Below are positions 38,288 through 49,368 of a stretch of 64,000 bases of DNA, piece after piece. Made by a program: the position numbers and the translations under genes. Origin of the DNA: Bigelowiella natans CCMP2755 (taxonomy: Eukaryota; Protista; Cercozoa). The DNA lies in the NCBI GenBank assembly GCA_000320545.1, contig ADNK01002621.1:1-64000 (forward strand). The letters are read 5' to 3'. Within the stretch, counting starts at the first letter, position 1; each line of letters begins with the position of its first letter. The notes below the pieces were generated by a model. It was not told the origin of the DNA. It worked only from the letters and a program-made list of their open reading frames with translations, and ran no database searches.

Positions 38288-41200
38288 TCATATTCGCGTG
38301 GGCGTGGCACGAGAGCCTTCTTTAGCTAGCAAGGCTTGGTTTCTACTAGAATCATTAGACGGCATGATTGAGGATGTCTGCACTACGACACCATCTACTA
38401 CAGATGAGGGAGCTTGCTGTGCTCTCCTAGAGGTCGACGGCACTAGTAAGCCTCTGATGGAAGACTGTGCACGCCGAGAGAGTCCAACATCAGAGCTCAA
38501 CTCTGGAACTCCTCGATGACTGGTCAACGGCGTACCAACTTGCGAACCTCCAATGGGTGTGTGAGGGGTGGAAGGGTCTCTTGAATTGTTGAAGTCTGAT
38601 CCTTGAGAGGCTACATTTTTTTCCTGGGGGTGTCGTTGCTTCGAGTCCATGACATTGAGCTCCAGAGGAGAAGGGGAGTGTCTTCCAGACTTATCCTTTG
38701 CAAGTCGACCTCTAGCTCCACCCTGCCCTCTCCACTTCAAGTACCAATATATCCCACCACACAACATGACCGCAACTGCAACCATAACTATTATGATGGG
38801 CAAAGCTAACAGCTTGTCATCGCTATCATTAACACTCCCTTCATCGATCTCAATGCTATCACTCTCGGAGAATGCCGTCGAGAATGCAGTTAGATGCGTG
38901 CACCTGCACAATGTTGATAGTTCGCGTATCTCATGCACCAAGCAACCAGTAGTTGACCAAGCCTGAGCCTCAACGTCGAAGTATCTGCAGGATCTTCTTC
39001 CTCCGCTGTTCCTGCTGAGGGCGTTGGTTGACAAGGGGATGGTGATATCGATCGGGCCGGTCCCATTGATTGTTATTTCTCTTCCTCCGTATGCATCATG
39101 AAAGGAGAGGACGACAATATCAGAATTGGTCGTGTTGCCTATGTCCGCAAAGCTATAAGCTTCTTTATTCAGCCTGTAGAAACGGGTCTCTAGCTCCTGG
39201 ACCCCAGAGAAGTTGGCACCTTGAAAAACACGGCTGCTGACCACAAACTTGGGCCTATCTGGCCCTTGCTCCCCAAACAGTACTCCCGGAGCGTCTTCAT
39301 CGCTCTCATCGACAAACGCAGCGACATAATCCTTTCTAACTTTGACTTCTGTGTTATCATCGGTCCTAATACTCAAGTTCTGTCCAGGCACGATGCCCTT
39401 GGCTAACGCTCCAGAGACTTCGTCCAGAATCCTTGAAAAAGACCTTAGACGACCCCCGCCTCCACTCCCGGCCCTCGATGATGAGGAAGAATTTGAGGGA
39501 GAATAGGATAAGGAGTCGACGTATGTAGCTACTGACGAAGAGGTCACAATATCCAAAGCCATGGTGGGGCTAAGAGCCAATTCATTGGTATTTACGGTAC
39601 TGAGAACAGCTAACGTCGAGCTTAATACTTCCTCTCCAACACTCTCAGAGCTCTCAGACTTTGAACCAAATACGATTCGAAGGAGAGCCAGACCTTGCTC
39701 GACCTCGGTTTGAGTGCTTGCATTCGTAATGACGTTCTTTGTGGAGCGCAATATACTCTCTTTGATGTTACGGTTACGCCTTAGCCTCTCGGCCCGTTGG
39801 GCGCTATTACCAGCAGCATCTGTTTGTAGTATTTCTTCAATGGCAGCAGCGATCTGCAACGCCTGGCCTAGCTCACCGTTACTGACTGAGTTGCTCAGCT
39901 CTCGGTCAATTATCGAGAGAGAGGTCTCCTCCACGTTATTGGTGGTCGAGCTTGCGGAGCTCGATGTGTTAAACTGAAGCAGTGATGGTCGCACGGTCAC
40001 GTCGAAGTCCGTGTATGCCATGGCTCCTTCACCATTTCGAGGGTCTGAATCACTGATGCATGCCCTCACCTTCTGTTTGTATGCGTTGGCCTCTAGCCCT
40101 GCTGGCAGTGCTCTCACCGTTATCGTAGGCGACTGCGCCCAATCTCCAAGCATATAATCTTCTGAAACGTCTCCTCCCACGCTACTCTTCAGCATCACGA
40201 AGCGATACCACAAGGAGGAGGAGGAGGAACCGCTAGGATCGTCTGGATCTGACCATCCACTGCAGCTGAAGGTGAAGTAGTCGAAATCGAGAGTCGTACC
40301 GTTGTCCTGTGATGCGATACAGGAGCCGCCGGAGGCTGGCGCATCTGCAACGAGGATGACGTGAGCCGTCCCAGACCTCCTGCCAGCCCCCCTCACATTG
40401 ACCGTACAGGTCGTCTGGCGGCCTGCAGCTAGCTGGGACTTTGGAATGCGTAGATATGATGATGAGAGAGAACCAGCAGCTCCTGTGTTGAAACCGCCTC
40501 CTGCACACGCCCACTCAAAGGTGTAGGCTCTAAACTGGGCGAGATCTGCCGCATCGAAGGTGGCTGAGAGAACGATATCCCTACTTGGGTCGACAAGATG
40601 CACCTCAGATTCATTCATTGGCTTACTTGGGGAGACGACCTCTACCCCAACAAGAATCGTCGGGCTAAGAGACACAGAGATCTTGACCCTCGCTGTCGCA
40701 GATCGAGTGTCGTAGGCTGAGCTCACATCCAGGTAGAAGTAGTAGTCTTGGCCTCCCTCTAGCGCGTTGGCGGGGACTAAAAGTTTGGAGGACGCCATAG
40801 AAGGGGGCATCGCATTTGCGGAGAAGCAAGGGGCCGTGCTCGAAGAGAAGACACGTTCGCACCGCCAACGGTAACCTATGTCATATCTTCTCGAGCTCCG
40901 CTGAGCTGGGTCTTTTGATGTGGAGCCGTCGAGGATAAATGATCGAGTGACAGATACGAGTCTATCACCGCCTCTTATTCTTGCCTTGATATCCTTTGCT
41001 ATAGCGTCGATACAAACGTCCTGTGTCTTAGTGTTCGACCACGCGCCAATACCCGCCTGGATCCCCATAGCACTGTAGGAAACCTTGAAGCAGTACACAA
41101 AGCCTGGAGTTAAGCTGTATTTTGGAATGAGTAACTTGTTTGAAGTTGGTCGTTTAATCTCCACATAGGGCCCAGACGTCTGGCGCCATAGGTAATGCCG

Positions 41201-44200
41201 CATTTTGGGGTCGCACACCTTTACAATACCTCGAGCTTTAATATTGACCCATCGTGAGGTATACAGAGTGCGGTTCTGTGGGCCAATGATTGAAAGCACC
41301 ATCGTGGGATAGTCAATACCGCACTCTTTGCATCGAAGGTTCGGCTTGTACAGACTGCCAGGACTTCTGCATGAATATTCGCGCGTCATCCTCGAGCCAA
41401 CAGGATAATACCCCACTTTACAATCGACGGTGCAGCTTGACCCCGAATCCAATATCTGACCTTCTAAGCAGCCTCCAGTGGCCGCACCTTTTACTCCAGG
41501 TTGAAACTCCCCGGGAAGCTCGCAAGTCACAGCCGGGCTTGTATCTGTTATAGCTATACACGACAGCGTTGGTGCCTCCAAAGTGCCTTCATGGCAATGG
41601 TATATACTTGTGCCTGAGGCCGAATAGTATCCACTCGCACATCCGACTTTGCAGAACGACCCACCCTCCAGCCGTGCTCCAGCAAAGCACTTAACGCTAC
41701 TGCCACCACTTGGTACTACATTGTTGGTGAAGAAGGATGGGAGCTGACATGAAGCCTCTTGGCACTTTAGCGCTGGCCTCAAGAGCCTACCTTCTACTGA
41801 GCAAACGAATTGGGATGGATTTATGTTTGTGGTTGTGGTGGGAACGTATCCTATGGCGCAGGATACTGTGCAGCTTGTTCCCCTCGATAGGTAGTTGTTC
41901 GATAAAGAGCCAGGGTCTGGGCAAGTATTATGTATAATGCCCCTGCCGTAGTACCGAGGCAGCTTGCAATCGGCTCGAGTGGGTTGACTTGTTGGAAGGC
42001 GAATGATTCGAGGTGAGGGAGCCTTTGTTGGAAGCCTTGATGGATAGCGTGTGGGACGGTGCGAGGGAGGAAGAGGGTCTGTGTTGGGTTGGCGCGTTGG
42101 AAAGCGTGTGGGGTATGGAGTTTGAAGGAATGTGGGCTGTCTCGTTGGCACAAGAGGAAGGTAGGTTGGCAGTTTAGTCGGAATAGGGTTTGGATACGGA
42201 GTTGGATATGATGATGATGATGAGGAAGGCGTTGGCCGAGATGTGGTTGGAACACCCGTGGAGATACCGGCACATTGAACAACAGGTGCAGGCGTGGGCT
42301 GAGAAGCAATGCCGATGGAACTGGTCGTCACCTTGAGCCGAGGCGGTTGACTTCCGCGACGGCTGTAACATTTGAAGCCTTTGTAGTCTGTATTCGGCTC
42401 AACCCAGAATGTGACCCACTGAGCTGATCGGGCCAGCGCACCGACCAGATGAGCCTTCACGTCAAATTCGAAGTAACGATTGGTGGCGTTGACCGCTAGT
42501 TCCGTGATCTTGCTTCCTTTCAAAGGGCTACTCGACCACGTTACTGATCCTTCGTTGATCGACGAGTCGCTTTGCGCAGCAAACACAGAAAACACGCCGC
42601 CGCCATTTTTTAACGTTACAGCATAAAGACGAAGCTGAGCCATCCGTACTTCGCCTCCCATTCCCAAGAAATGTGACACATTAAAGTTGAAGAGCCCCAC
42701 AATCTTGGCATTTGCATTACGGTACACCTCCACATTGGACCAGTCGCCTGTAGAGGTCGGAGAAGCCTCTCGAATCGATGCGTCGTTGTCGCACACATCT
42801 GAAACCGTCGAGATTGTTGCCCCTGCAGTGACGTACACAGATTTGGAAGTTCCCTGGCCACCGGCTGCATCAACCGCTACAGCTCGCAAGGCGTAAGACC
42901 CAGGCGATGGTGGACTCCAATCTACGGTGTATGGCGCTTGGGTGTCAACGCCAATCGACACACCACTTGCAAAAAACTCCACCCGTGACACAGTGCCGTC
43001 GCTGTCTTCTGCTGCTGCGGCAATGACAGCGCTTTGCCCAACCTGTAAGTTGGTGAGAGCGGCAGGCGAGATGATCAAGGCCGAGGGCAGACGATTCCCA
43101 ACAAACACATCTACTGTCAACGACGTAGCATTGTTGCCATCAGTATCCTTGGCGACCGCCTTGATTGAGTATGAACCATCTGGAGGAGTGAATCCAATAC
43201 GGAAAGGAGGAGGAGCTCGAGACACGCCAATAAGGCAATCGCCGGCGAAGAATAAAACCTTTTCGATGCCCCCAGGGCTTCCAATCTTTGAGCCAGAAGG
43301 ATCTGTGGCATTAGCATAGATCTCAATGTTCTGCCCCGAGATGAAACTGGTGCCGTTTGAGGGAGAGACAACGGAAATGGTGGGAAGGTGACTTTGATCC
43401 TGTATCCACAGAGACATGGAAGTGTCGATGAAGGTGGAGATACGAACAGCGTCAAAATAAAGCGTCCTCATATCTCGGATCTCTGTGTACATGCCAAACT
43501 TGATGTATCCTCTTGACGAGGAGCTCGCGAGGTTTCGTCCTAGGTGTTCAAAGGCAAGTTTGCCATTGAGCCAGACGCGGATGATGCCGCTACTTGACGT
43601 CGAAGACTTGTAGTACACCTTCACGTCTGTCCAAGCGTCTCGCTTTGCATAGCCAATAGGCGTTCCTTCGTCGGTCGGGCTCGTGAAGTACTCGCCCCTG
43701 AAAAACAACCTGTAGTCGCCCAAGTTGCTCATCCTCAGCGCAGCTGGGGGGTTGCCTCCTCCGACCTGCTTCCATTGCGAGATGACACATGAGTATCTGG
43801 AAACTTGGTCCCAAGTGAAATCAGGCCTGAAGCTCATCGTGTAGTAATATTCATCACCGGGGTAGAACTTGTACGCCTCAGCACTCGTATCTAACTCGGC
43901 ACGGTAGGCATAGTCGCTATTGGGGTAACTTCGGCCGTCCGCCTGCACTTTGAGCACATATCGTCCTTCTCTGGCCCAATCTACCTCAACGACCGAATGG
44001 TTGTGCAGTTTGCTAGGACCGATGTTAGTGCCACCTTTCCTCACCGAGCTATCTCCATTCTCTGAGTACGTTGGAGTCAGAGGTACAACAAGCCCCGATT
44101 CCACCGTCCCGCTTTCCCATGAGGCAGAGACTGCACGTCCCCCACCCTGGCTTCGTGTGTTGGGGGCGTGTGTGGGCTGGCGAGAAAGAGGAGAAGGGGG

Positions 44201-47065
44201 AGCTCCAGGGTCAAGTGTGGGTTGTAGGGCCGGTTGATTGGTGGGGTGCCTTGTAGGTTGTTGCGTAGGCAGAGGTTGTTTAGTCGGCTGCAGCGTTGGC
44301 ATTGGAGTTGGATTGGAAGGCGACCGGCTTGGATATGGAGTTGGAGCTTTTGTTGGTGAATGCGTTGGGAATGGAGTCGGATTTGATGGTACTCTGTTAG
44401 GATCGTAGAAGGATGGGTATTTAGTTGGCTGCTTTGTAGGCTGGCGGGTAGAGGGTGCCGGTGATGCAGCTGTAGGATACGCTGTCGGATAATTCGATGG
44501 GGAGGTAAGTGGGCTTACAGTTGCTGTTGGCGATGCTGTTAAGGCTGCTCCAAATAGAGCAGGAAATGATATTGAAGCACCAGCATAATAGCTTGTAGAG
44601 TGATTGTAGTATTCTGCCTGGGACGGATGGGGAAGGGGGACTTCCAACAGGGTCACAGAGCTAGTTGAACGTATCACAACCTTGCTGAGGGATTGCTTTG
44701 GCCACACACCCTGGAATGCGAATGGAATTGAGGCATCTTCGAAGATTTGAGGTAATGAGAAGCGTACGGTTAACTTCGGCAGTGGAGATGAAGAATAGCT
44801 GGGAACCAAAGGCCAGCCAGGAATCTGACTCAGCGTGCGGTTGGCGAGTGCAACAGTCAAGTTCCACTTAGATTCGGTTGAAGGGCGCCTGAGTTGCAGT
44901 AGAACAGCCTGCTCTGCGATGACATCAATGTTAGAGCCACCTGGGCCGATAGGTAGCGTGATTGATGTCTGAGGCTTATAGAACGCTGCCTGGATGCTTT
45001 TTGGTCTGCGAAAAGACCCCTCTCGATAATCTACAACCACTTGTGCGTGCTCATCGTTGCGGAGGACTACAATACCCGTTGAGGTAAATAGTGTCTTTGC
45101 AAGGTCTCCTATCTCATTGGGATTCTTGGATGGGACTACGGCGTACTTATATTCTGCATCGGAGGGGTTCGCACCGTGGTCAATAACGATTAGCATGATG
45201 TAGTCTGAGTTTTCGTACTCTCCACCACTCACCCACCTTCTCTTCTCTCCCCAGCTACGGCTTGACTTGGCGCTGCTATCTGTAGCCACCACATCACTGT
45301 AGCCGCATCTGAGCTCCAAATTTATAGCTTGATTGGAAAATGGGTTTGATATTATGTATCCAACACCAGCTTGGTGGATCCACGCAGCCTGCAACGGCTG
45401 GATAGCGATCGATGTTGTGCAGCCATTACTTGTGGAGAAGGGAATTACGGTCGCAGCCGAAGGAGATGTAGCTGAAACTTTGTATGTTATTTCCCCACGC
45501 CACCGCGTTTGGTCAACCGTCGTAACGATTGGCCTACCCTGCCCTGCCTTAATTCTGTTTATGGAGTTGCCCAATAGGACAGCCCCAAAGTCCATGAAGA
45601 AGAAACCCTTGTTGGCTGTAGCTGTGTTGTAATCTTCAGTCTCCTGCAAGCTTTGGCTGTACCGAAAGGCAGAAATTCCTATCTCCCCATCAGAGACGGT
45701 GCCGGCAAATGAATTTCCTCCACACCGATATCCTTTCTTTGGAATATTATCTGTCCGCCATTCCTCAGTGACTCCTAGTTGAAGTATGTGGTTGGTGTGA
45801 GAAGAGAATAAGTGAAATAATGGTGATGATGATGATGATGATGATGATAAGAAGGATGAGGAGAAGGAGGAGGATGGGGAGGGGTTTGGAAAGTACAAAA
45901 ACAACGGTGAATCGGTGGGTGTGGTTGATACCCGGGAGCACGTGCCAATCCATTCTGGCCCTTATCATATCATATTCATCCCCGTAAACCTTGACCTGGA
46001 AGAGCCCCGACCCCATATGCCATGACTTGCCTGGTGACTCAAAATCCTCTGCTCCTTGTGCCATATTCGATCGCATCCTCACAGACATATACCAGCCATT
46101 CACTCGGTGTACCATTGCATTGACATTCCAAAAAGCTGTGTTTCCGTTCCTTGCTGGTTGTGGTCCCTCGGATGACGAAGTACTTGCTCTTAAAGCCTCA
46201 AGTACAGTTTCTCCACAAGTGGAGGATATCTCAGCGGCAAAATAGTCAACAATGATATCAACGGCTTCCCTAAATATCCTACTCCAAAATTCAAACATGA
46301 AGTCGGAAAAGTAGCTCCGTCCGCTAAACCCAAAATCAAGGTGCCCTTTGAAGACGATCTTTGGGTATGTATACACGAGAAATTTGGCTGGTGTCTCGAA
46401 CCAAGATGCCGGAAAAGCGTAGCGGGTTTGTCGGACGATCTTGGCCACCTTGAATTTGTTTGTGTGAGTGTGCGCGTGTGTGCGTGTGTGCATGTGTGTG
46501 TGTGCGCGTGTGTGCGTGTGCGCGTGCGAATGTGAAAAGGTTTTTAAAAAAATAATGGCAAAACATTGGATGTTGCGACACCTTGAGAGGATCGTTGAGC
46601 CATTCAAATCCATAGGCCCATAAAGCACTATCCTGGCAATTATCACAGTGGTGCGAAATCATGCCATCCGGCAAAAATCCGGACATGAACATCATTTTTG
46701 GCCTAGTATAAACGTCTAGCAAAAGAGAACGGACATCTTCGAAAACACCTGTTCGAAAACAAAGTATTTGTTGTGAGTGAAACAACGTGACGGTTAAAGA
46801 TGGTGCCTTGCCTTGCGGTGTTGGAAGAGCATGAATGAAAGCAAAGTTTGAGGTTATTGATTTCCCAGAGGAAAAGGATCTTGAATCGGTGTAGTCCAAT
46901 GAAAAGTTGTAACTATTGGAGTACCTGTGTATTTTATGCGTGTATCGATCTATGTAATCATAATTCGACACTTTATCACGACTTTATGTACGAACACAAA
47001 TATACTTACTAATCTGATTTCATGTAGTGAGTGGTGAATGTTTTGCGTGCGTATGTATTGGATCT

Positions 47066-47145
<80 letters not shown>

Positions 47146-48205
47146 ATGCGTGCGTGCGTGCATGTGTTGGTAGCGGAATATTTGGCAAAAACGACTGCAA
47201 GAACCAGCTAAAGTTCTTCGAATATCGCTACTAACACACATAAAATAGCAGATGCCATCGTAGCTCGCTTACCAATATGGCATGTAGCTGAATGGTTTGT
47301 TGTAGTCTTGCCATATTCCCATAAGTGCCACCCATCCTCGAAGCCGATGAGCTTGATTCGCGTCCTGCCAAAGGCCTGTGCTGTAGTTAGCATTTAGCAA
47401 GTCGCCCCAGCGGCCTTTAAGATACCCAAGCCATCGACGCCTGGGTGTAACGCAGAACCTGTTTGAACACGCACACAAGCATACTATCACAATATGATCC
47501 CAACGAAGCTTGTTCCGGGGAAAGAAACGCCCCTCTCCAACCCCTCTCTCATCTTCTTGAGGGTGGTGCATTTGTGGTCAAAAGCATTGTTCTCTTACTG
47601 CGTGGAGAGGAGACGATCTACGCCACTTTCAAACACCGATGCGATCTCCTTGTCAGCGCCTTGAGCTCGAATTTCCGCCCTCGCCCATTTCGACACCAGT
47701 AATGCAGGCAACCCGAGAGGATCCGTCAGGTCCCACTGGTGTGTAACCTGGTTGTGCGATAGCGTGTTTCTATTATAATCTACATACCCCTCGCACCGAA
47801 GGTTCTTGCGCGAGTCTTGAAGTAATGCGAATTCAGAGGGTGTCCACAAGTCACTCACGTCCACCGGTATAGCGGGTGCAAGCGCTCCGATCGAGCTCGC
47901 GATTGAGACAAGCAGCCGGCTCCTCGTTGCATTGTCAAGGCTATTAACCCTGCCGGTGTACGCGTAACCGAGCTTACCGATGTCCTCAGTCGCGCCCTGC
48001 CACTTTGAGTACAGACTACTGCTGCTGCGCCTCTGTGTTGGGGTCCATGTGTACATCGGCAGGTTCTTCAGCTGCCCTGCATTTGACTCGATATAGTTCA
48101 TTTCTGATAGAACCTGTAGAATATAGCAAATGAAATTTGTGCGCGTATACATGCATACACATGCCCCCCCTCCCCCTCCCCACTACGAACATGGATGGAG
48201 AAGGA

Positions 48206-48245
<40 letters not shown>

Positions 48246-48834
48246 CCCTTACGAATGTTATATCTTTGGTGTACTCTAAATTAATCCACCCTTCTTTCCC
48301 CTAATATCCATTTTCCCTGCTCCGCATAGATATACAAACCTGTGAGTCGCTGAAGGAGCCTCTTCCATAGGTCCGGGGTTCGGTGTATAGATATTCTAGG
48401 ATCCGACGGGACACGATTTCTTGTAGCGTCTGCTCCACTACCCTTATCTCAAATTCCACGGGGCATTCCCCCCCTCCACCTCCTATAGATCGAAGCTCTG
48501 CCCTCAGCGTGTACACCACCCCAACCTCCCCGGATGTGTTTTGGGGTGCCACTCTCAGAGCACCGAACAGCCTCCCTGCCTTGTCTCTTTCGTTAACCAC
48601 CTCGAACCGCCGCCCCGCACTCTCAATTAATACGTACTCTGTCCCATTCATAGACGATGAAGAGGAGGAGGAGACGAGACGGTTGGCAAGCGGATTGAGA
48701 CGGCCATGGACATATGTCCCTGCACTACTCCCAGCAGCTATGTCGAAGTAGCCTGCGAGAGTGTGCTGCGCATCGGGACAGAGGACAGAAGAGGCGGATA
48801 TAAGGGGAATGCAAAGGAAGACTAATTGCAGCAT
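38288..48834 (-). CDS. Giant type-I membrane protein: signal, cadherin/Ig-like, PL8-like lyase, PT repeats, second (jelly-roll) polysaccharide lyase, 2x bacterial Ig, DNRLRE-like, PT repeats, sushi-like repeats, PKD/REJ, GAIN/GPS, one TM, cytoplasmic tail
   Basis: Signal MLQLVFLCIPLISAS (48834; an upstream in-frame ATG lies at 48978). PL8-like GFLPDGMISHH..AYG, SGRSY, WYMSVRMRS, SWHMGSG..GDEY..MDWHVLPG, NSFAGTVSDG, ANKGFFF, TTVDQ and IDHG. Second lyase YRAEL..VISQWK..YIKFGMY. REJ IRGGDR..LDGSTSKDP and FSCSGWSD. GPS CRYFD..AWSTTGC..CRCTHLTAFS. TM LLALPIIIVMVAVAVMLCGGIYWYL. The final exon is 45774-38288. Confidence 0.85.
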
Positions 48835-49154
48835 TTGGCAATTGTTGCTCCCGTGTGTGCAGCGTGTGTCCCTTTTGAGTTGCCTGCCTCCAGGGTGTCC
48901 AGCTGTTGTTCCCTTTGAGTTCCCCCCCCTCGGAGTTGTAATGATTGTATTAAGATGCGTTCCACGCAAATCCGGCATAACGTTGCCGTTTTTCGGGGGA
49001 TCCCGGGGAAGGAAAATTCAGACGCCCCAACATTTTTGTGGTCGGTCAAACTCACACAGTGCTACCCAAAAACAACCTCATTTGGTTTGCATGCGACAAG
49101 AACGAAAAACTATAATGTTTCTCTTTTCGTCGTCCATGAATCGGTGACCACGTC

Positions 49155-49208
49155 TAGATCTACGAGTACTCGTAGATCTATGTAGATCTACAGGCCTGTA
49201 GATCTACA
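49155..49208. repeat. Two abutting perfect palindromes built from TAGATCTA
   Basis: tagatctacgagtactcgtagatcta (49155-49180) and tgtagatctacaggcctgtagatctaca (49181-49208). Confidence 0.9.
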
Positions 49209-49368
49209 GCAGAATGGCACAGAGCTTAAACATGTAACGGCCCGTGGCTCGTGGCTGATTTAAGGTGTTTCGTAACTTTACTATGTAAGATCAAAGTTGC
49301 CACAAGTTGCCATAGGCCATAATAGACCTACGACATCCAGTGCGACTAGATCTAATTTCAAGACGAAA

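Follow-up and report, generated by a model that had tools for sequence, protein, structure and literature searches.

A putative bacterial-type uronate-polysaccharide lyase cassette on a REJ-GAIN stalk in the photosynthetic marine protist Bigelowiella natans

A 64,000-nt stretch of the Bigelowiella natans CCMP2755 genome (positions 1 to 64,000 of the forward strand of contig ADNK01002621.1, assembly GCA_000320545.1; the window) contains a minus-strand gene at 38288–48834 with seven exons and a product of ~3,159 aa. We think it probable, judging from sequence comparisons, that this product is a type I surface protein of a photosynthetic marine protist in which a bacterial-type uronate-polysaccharide lyase cassette is carried on a GAIN stalk. 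The outer half of the predicted protein, ~1,800 aa, would consist of a PL8 module, a PF14099 (PL20-like) jelly-roll, a pair of Big_7 spacers, and CBM96 as a binding module. The inner half would be a host scaffold with three sushi-like repeats, a REJ domain, a GAIN domain with an intact GPS, one transmembrane (TM) helix, and a short tail. Direct observation covers the architecture, the single spliced mRNA, the bacterial affinity of the cassette and its uniqueness in the genome, the paralogy of the stalk, and the conservation of residues in the PL8 module.

The gene is open and spliced as a single unit. An open reading frame (ORF) of 2,538 codons at 38288–45904 (minus strand, as are all features below) runs from the PL8 sandwich through the TM helix without a stop codon. 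Joining the exons gives an open frame of 3,207 codons if counted from an ATG at 48978, or of 3,159 from an ATG at 48834 that directly precedes a signal-peptide-like hydrophobic segment. Public runs from the same species were placed on 43400–49300, and the alignment of the longest informative contig, from run X1, therefore ends at 43400. This spliced contig (9,669 nt) has its 5' start at 48982, skips six introns, and enters the large exon; if its remainder below 43400 is colinear, it ends ~40 nt past the stop codon, and additional TM exons further downstream were rejected on that basis. Identical splice joints were found in contigs from two further studies (X5 and X8), making three studies overall. 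A raw-read RNA run contributed only five reads, from which an expression level is not readable. Placement of canonical splice sites yielded five GT-AG introns and one GC-AG intron, which rules out splicing of the non-canonical dinoflagellate type. The GC-AG intron is intron 4, of 63 nt (46749–46811), and a G directly follows the acceptor AG at all six junctions. Microsatellites of (GA)n or (CA)n lie inside introns 1, 3, and 5 and a CTT/CAT-rich tract inside intron 6, with the repeat tracts at 48200–48260, 47060–47170, 46450–46540, and 45810–45890.

An earlier note on this DNA had described one gene joining lyase-like, bacterial Ig, and DNRLRE-like modules to Pro/Thr linkers, sushi-like repeats, REJ, a GPS, and a single TM segment. 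ORF and Pfam analysis located all of these elements at or within a few bases of the positions it gave, and the intact H-L|T of the GPS (38896–38888) and the single TM segment can be read from the sequence. Its statement that the protein has no seven-transmembrane (7TM) or channel domain agrees with the one TM segment, polar tail, and stop codon seen here, and the check that it proposed on transcript continuity is answered by the 9,669-nt spliced contig with joints recurring in three studies, colinearity being assumed below 43400.

Pfam matches occur in the order Lyase_8 (PL8), PF14099, two Big_7, CBM96, REJ, and GPS, and all are above the curated cut-offs. On the large ORF the E-values are 2.2e-33 for REJ, 1.8e-25 for Big_7 (two stretches), 3.1e-23 for PF14099, 9.5e-22 for Lyase_8, 7.9e-13 for CBM96, and 1.6e-07 for GPS. 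Two Pro/Thr-rich linkers lie between modules, at 44126–44491 and 41969–42322. Database searches and fold predictions were done on single exons or on the sequences of relatives.

The PL8 module spans all seven exons. The coding part of exon 1 (48340–48834) encodes the signal-peptide-like segment, followed by an N-terminal domain with a YFDI..G motif that is conserved across the PL8 subfamily. Exon 2 (47599–48113) encodes an N-terminal part of the PL8-type enzyme that has no Pfam match and is homologous to the equivalent region of relatives. A family-invariant DAN..HR motif with a candidate catalytic Asn, Asn419, is found in exon 3 (47273–47458), and a short Ser/Asn-rich segment in exon 4 (46812–46924) comes before the GC-AG intron. 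Exon 5 (46582–46748) bears a DGMISHH...AYG motif with His517, His518, and Tyr530. Arg584, Glu674, and the start of the Lyase_8 super-sandwich are in exon 6 (45932–46448), and the start of exon 7 (44492–45774) holds the remainder of the super-sandwich and the C-terminal PL8 part.

Lyase_8 (PF02278) is also matched above its cut-off on the upstream exon (1e-13). A profile of the PL8 subfamily matches chondroitinase AC (1HM2) at 3.6e-57, and in this alignment the chondroitinase residues Tyr234, Arg288, and Glu371 correspond to Tyr530 (in AYG), Arg584 (in GRSY), and Glu674 (in GAEDF). The gene retains 88 of the 94 near-invariant columns defined by 13 full-length homologues, including Asn419 and His517/518, and the His-His pair sits 12 residues ahead of the catalytic-type Tyr. 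The earlier note had proposed that His and Tyr of a PL8 catalytic-type motif are kept; the Tyr is borne out by its alignment with Tyr234, and the two His are invariant in the subfamily. When exon 5 was searched alone with phmmer, only a low-complexity match was returned. The subfamily is rare, with 220 matches at E ≤ 0.001 among 1.84 billion representatives, of which eight are below 1e-30. From this pattern of conservation, the PL8 module is probably an active uronate-polysaccharide lyase.

Downstream of the first linker, the PF14099 module occupies 43442–44116 (Pfam match proper 43442–43990) and scores 83 bits against a cut-off of 29.9. It is followed by the two Big_7 (bacterial Ig-like) domains at 42872–43375 and by the CBM96 (DNRLRE-type, PF24517) module at 42323–42787, which scores 49 bits against a cut-off of 26 and ends the bacterial-type block. 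Alginate is bound by the founding member of CBM96 (PMC9971899), a published bacterial protein combines PL20 with DNRLRE and Ig-like modules (PMC10483417), and polysaccharide lyases are already known from protists (PMC11890756). A fungal glucuronan-degrading system also exists in the literature. Because of the CBM96, PL20-DNRLRE, and fungal precedents, our guess, by analogy, is that the substrate is glucuronan, alginate, or a related bacterial or algal uronate exopolymer. The Trichoderma glucuronan lyase system, which Pilgaard et al. are said to have treated in 2022, reportedly combines PL8 and PL20 and involves the families PL7, PL8, PL20, and PL38.

The cassette has bacterial affinity and no second copy in the genome. 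Profile searches of the 91.4-Mb genome matched Lyase_8, PF14099, and CBM96 each in this gene only. In a colinear, near gap-free alignment of 606 residues, the PF14099-Big_7-Big_7-CBM96 block shares 46% identity with the C-terminal part of P0002, a 2,276-aa protein encoded on a metagenomic contig whose neighbouring genes carry PSD, PSCyt, and HXXSHH domains. We take these families to be typical of Planctomycetota and their kin, and the contig to be of planctomycete type. A maximum-likelihood tree of PL8 sequences (43 rows, unrooted) was constructed, omitting duplicates (L016, L018, P0033, and P0035), the long rows P0065 and P0070, and matches shorter than ~280 residues. The gene falls with seven other sequences in a protist clade of eight rows (support 100/100), and this clade groups at 98/95 with one of Verrucomicrobiota/Lentisphaerota. 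On the opposite side of the tree are Chloroflexota, Gammaproteobacteria, and Puniceicoccaceae. From the broad bacterial and patchy eukaryotic distribution, we infer a transfer from bacteria to eukaryotes.

Within the protist clade, P0180 (L019:8001-12407) is flanked by the eukaryotic genes CCDC93 and MSS51, and P0181 derives from MMETSP eukaryote transcriptomes. L016 and L018 lie on fragmented, GC-rich marine scaffolds, that of L018 being a TARA scaffold. Both are broken into several frames, by either short introns or assembly errors. Domain order is CBM96-PL8-PF14099-Big_7-CBM96 in L018, at ~40–43% identity, and this sequence ends soon after. P0180 has the order CBM96-PL8-CBM96 and a C-terminal TM helix, while P0181 combines a signal peptide with a hydrophobic C-terminus, possibly a lipid-anchor signal. 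In L018 as in P0180, the first CBM96 match falls upstream of the PL8 gene as called; L016, L018, and L019 have this extra CBM96 upstream of PL8, and it is absent from the gene in the window. Since the ends of P0180 and P0181 resemble surface anchors, display of the PL8 clade on the cell surface seems to be recurrent, and anchoring seems to have arisen in several ways. By the same comparisons, the cassette seems to pre-exist as a stand-alone, surface-anchored unit in other marine protists. Among the relatives seen, only this gene puts the cassette on a REJ-GAIN stalk.

Genes of the two lyase families also occur close together in bacteria. In two of five genomes of the Verrucomicrobiota/Lentisphaerota clade, a PF14099 match shares its contig number with PL8. 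In one Verrucomicrobiota metagenome-assembled genome (L041:441-5805), a PL8 gene of 1,375 aa is followed 50 nt on, on the same strand, by a PF14099 gene of 395 aa. This pair is operon-like, and its module order is the same as in the protist fusions.

The stalk begins behind the second linker. Three repeats of ~70 aa with six Cys each (41330–41968) precede REJ; they are sushi-like, scoring 19.6 bits here against a Pfam Sushi cut-off of 20.7 and 21.5 bits in a relative, L017. The REJ domain (PF02010, 39929–41143; genome profile match 39977–41146) covers 391 of 452 profile positions upstream of the GPS. The GAIN-type domain (38852–39919) is predicted to have a helical half and then a beta half, the latter closing with the GPS motif (PF01825, 38879–38992; 32 bits against a cut-off of 22.5). 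The GPS reads C-x-C-T-H-L-T-A-F, and the His-Leu-Thr is preceded in canonical spacing by two further Cys and a Trp, giving four Cys in all. A profile of the GAIN region that includes paralogs matched ~200 residues of the ADGRL3 GAIN domain at 3.6e-5 and the ADGRF1 GPS at 9e-7. After the GPS there is one strong hydrophobic segment, the predicted TM helix at 38738–38806, and then a Ser/Pro-rich polar tail of ~149 aa (38288–38737; stop codon 38288–38290) that is predicted to be cytoplasmic and lacks a Pfam domain. This one segment, polar tail, and stop codon leave no 7TM region after the GPS, and Pfam and hydrophobicity analysis found neither a PLAT match nor an 11-TM region there.

Host relatives of the stalk were identified in the same genome. 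A search with the REJ-GAIN part recovered two paralogs, on contigs C3352 and C2648, at 36–42% identity. Homology begins at about model residue 1922, where Pro/Thr linker 2 ends, and takes in the sushi-like repeats, REJ, and GAIN as far as the GPS; from this starting point we place the junction of cassette and stalk in the linker (41969–42322). C3352 ends alike, with the same GPS motif, one TM segment, and a short tail. No recognisable enzyme domain occurs upstream of the stalk in either C3352 or C2648. Upstream of the C2648 paralog (L076:6634-9389), three forward frames stay open for ~2 kb without a Pfam domain, pointing to a long low-complexity repeat. REJ has 103 matches in the 91.4-Mb genome, many of them in ORFs of 1,000–2,800 aa. 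When seven long ORFs at other REJ loci were scanned, six had REJ with or without GPS, and the seventh (L025), upstream of a REJ ORF, had a C-type lectin and RCC1-like repeats. The paralogs indicate that the stalk is a host module, belonging to a small subfamily of single-pass sushi-REJ-GAIN-TM proteins within the very large expansion of REJ. Outside the genome, the transcript-like contig L017 is 45% identical over residues 1872–3063 and is cut within the linker. Its first 160 nt resemble the end of CBM96 over only ~9 residues, too little for L017 to be accepted as a carrier of the cassette. Two metagenome scans gave no longer contigs of this stalk relative, and the ESM Atlas gave no usable match.

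Taken together as a mechanism, beta-elimination by the PL8 module would cleave an acidic polysaccharide at the surface of the cell, with the PF14099 module and CBM96 cooperating on the same polymer. The GAIN domain would cut itself at HL|T, leaving an enzyme-bearing fragment of ~2,960 aa held non-covalently on a membrane stub of 200 aa, and this fragment could detach under force. As to origin, marine protists may have acquired lyase genes of the Planctomycetota-Verrucomicrobiota-Chlamydiota (PVC) type and fused them into a cassette. In relatives, the cassette would be anchored by other means; here it would have been joined through a Pro/Thr linker to a single-pass member of the sushi-REJ-GAIN subfamily.

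Several findings weigh against the reading of the protein as a cleavable, surface-displayed lyase of bacterial origin. In the PL8 module, Arg292 of chondroitinase AC is not conserved. This Arg helps to recognise GalNAc substituents, so its loss fits a substrate other than that of chondroitinase AC. A family-invariant Arg is replaced by Met669 (given as 46458–46460); the column is Arg in 13 homologues, and its counterpart in chondroitinase AC is Arg366, five positions ahead of the catalytic Glu. The terminal branch of this sequence in the PL8 tree is long (0.97). Pfam Lyase_8_N and Lyase_8_C, which do match bacterial members of the subfamily, do not match this protein, and the N-terminal ~450 residues have no Pfam match and no assigned fold. 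The PDB alignments begin at residue 231 or later, and it is from invariance in the subfamily and position in the motifs that we infer Asn419 and His518 to be the equivalents of Asn175 and His225. For the PF14099 module, the PL20 glucuronan lyase 2ZZJ is the sole relative among PDB sequences, and a weak one (E = 0.017), its Tyr200 pairing with the Tyr in FGMYTE; the single module searched with phmmer had no match among PDB sequences. An AlphaFold model of this module from a 3-row alignment failed (predicted local distance difference test score, pLDDT, 36). The suggestion that the N-terminal domains are lyases is supported at the level of family, with Lyase_8 and PF14099 both matched. The PF14099 gene of L041 is only distantly related to the module here, and its adjacency to PL8 therefore backs a partnership of the two families and not direct ancestry. 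The tree is unrooted, so that the direction of transfer is not read off it. The AlphaFold model of the GAIN region (7-row alignment) is of low confidence (pLDDT 50), with eight helices and then strands, and although its top eight Foldseek matches are all GAIN domains, their TM-scores are 0.15–0.34. Finally, the GAIN domain of BAI3 was solved uncleaved though its motif is intact (Araç et al. 2012, PMC3321182).

This last precedent bears on a possible, if doubtful, alternative in which the lyase is active and the stalk is a mere spacer or anchor, the GPS being uncleaved or cleaved without a role and the enzyme never released. Uncleaved GAIN domains are known (PMC3321182), the protein has no 7TM or channel to receive a tethered agonist, and relatives reach surface display with a simple TM helix. 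Against it, the HL|T triad, the four Cys, and the Trp are kept both in the gene and in its single-pass paralog C3352, which points to selection acting on the site of cleavage. Cleavage requires the entire GAIN domain, the resulting pieces remain bound to each other, and such domains exist in protists (Araç et al. 2012, PMC3321182). GPS autoproteolysis is likely in this protein.

We find it unlikely that the protein is a receptor and not an enzyme. Its lyase-like modules would then bind or sense acidic polysaccharide (a prey capsule, a biofilm, or a mating or settlement cue), as the egg-jelly receptor does, and GAIN and REJ would relay force or a binding event to the short tail or to membrane proteins acting as partners. 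The ligand of the sea urchin protein suREJ1 is an acidic polysaccharide, a fucose sulfate polymer. REJ-GPS proteins are known as receptors and their family is hugely expanded here, the PL8 sequence has a long branch and has lost one family-invariant Arg, the PF14099 module is only a candidate lyase, and CBM96 is a binding module. A purely binding relic would not, however, be expected to keep Tyr, Arg, Glu, both His, and 88 of 94 near-invariant positions. The tail is without a signalling domain, and in relatives the cassette comes with a plain TM end or one resembling a lipid anchor, receptor parts being absent.

An artefact of bacterial contamination, chimeric assembly, or false gene fusion is highly improbable: the lyase modules are bacterial-type and unique in the genome, and the genome's own protein models did not appear among the search results, but one uninterrupted ORF of 7.6 kb contains the PL8 sandwich together with REJ, GPS, and TM, six spliceosomal introns that split the PL8 part are removed in transcript contigs of three studies, and host-type Pro/Thr linkers lie between modules. 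In these searches, the full-length word search returned mostly Big_7 repeat proteins and not the genome's own model, and the PL8 half and the stalk, searched separately, returned one match each.

The preferred reading, a surface lyase on a GAIN stalk, can be extended to a more speculative role for the stalk that we regard as rather unlikely. GAIN would act as a release latch, such that the head cuts polymer on prey, biofilm, or particles, a pull frees the ~2,960-aa fragment onto the target, and the stub reports contact. The expanded REJ-GAIN stalks could then be a general display-and-release scaffold for acquired bacterial modules. Apart from this extension, the gene bears on several fields. 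GAIN and REJ have been studied almost only as parts of receptors, and here the stalk carries catalytic-type cargo; being without a 7TM or channel domain, it is a natural test of what GAIN cleavage alone does in holding, spacing, or releasing an ectodomain. For enzymology and ocean carbon, the sequences point to a rare PL8 subfamily having a protist clade whose members would be displayed on the cell surface. The fusion itself argues that PL8 and PF14099 lyases share one substrate, and the adjacency in Verrucomicrobiota backs this. For genome evolution, the gene is a transcribed case in which modules of bacterial type acquired introns and linkers of the host and became attached to a host receptor family undergoing expansion.

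Comparison with known systems separates the parts, which are familiar, from their combination. The PL8 module resembles chondroitinase AC of Pedobacter heparinus (1CB8/1HM2), xanthan lyase, and the fungal mannuronate lyase 7R2X in its super-sandwich and catalytic Tyr, Arg, and Glu; a His-His pair just upstream of the Tyr would be a further likeness. It departs from these lyases by an additional domain at the N-terminus, an insertion separating the Asn and His motifs, and the absence of Arg292. The PL20 glucuronan lyase of Trichoderma reesei (2ZZJ) shares the PF14099 jelly-roll and a G-x-Y Tyr aligned with Tyr200, though the match is marginal (E = 0.017). In the Galbibacter protein HX109 (DNRLRE-FN3-PL20-type IX secretion system signal; PMC10483417), PF14099 is likewise combined with DNRLRE/CBM96 and Ig-like spacers. 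In contrast to both, PF14099 is here fused behind PL8 and set on a eukaryotic stalk. The protist cassette homologues (L018, L019/P0180, L016, and P0181) share the PL8 clade (100/100), and L018 also shares the PF14099-Big_7-CBM96 order, but none shows a REJ or GAIN part.

On the side of the stalk, suREJ1 and other single- or few-pass REJ-GPS proteins (PMC1934368) are alike in having an extracellular REJ, a GPS, and a membrane anchor without the channel half. They differ in that suREJ1 bears lectin and EGF modules and no enzymes, whereas the distal half here is a bacterial-type lyase cassette. Polycystin-1 (PKD1) has the same sequence of REJ and then GAIN/GPS with HL|T just before the first TM helix; here there is no PLAT domain, one TM helix in place of eleven, and no PKD2-like partner region. 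[quoted passage not shown] The literature examined on aGPCRs and GAIN contained neither an enzyme-bearing GAIN protein nor a polysaccharide lyase in an aGPCR ectodomain, no hydrolase or lyase is mentioned in a wide survey of receptors with GAIN among animal relatives, and a full-text literature search found no publication joining polysaccharide lyase, REJ, and GPS. The idea in the earlier note of an undescribed type of enzyme-bearing GAIN protein therefore holds for the combination, which was not found in the literature, and does not extend to a new protein family. The feature for which no description was found is a catalytic carbohydrate-active enzyme (CAZyme) cassette on a REJ-GAIN stalk; every part comes from a known family, and the gene is a lineage-specific domain shuffle.

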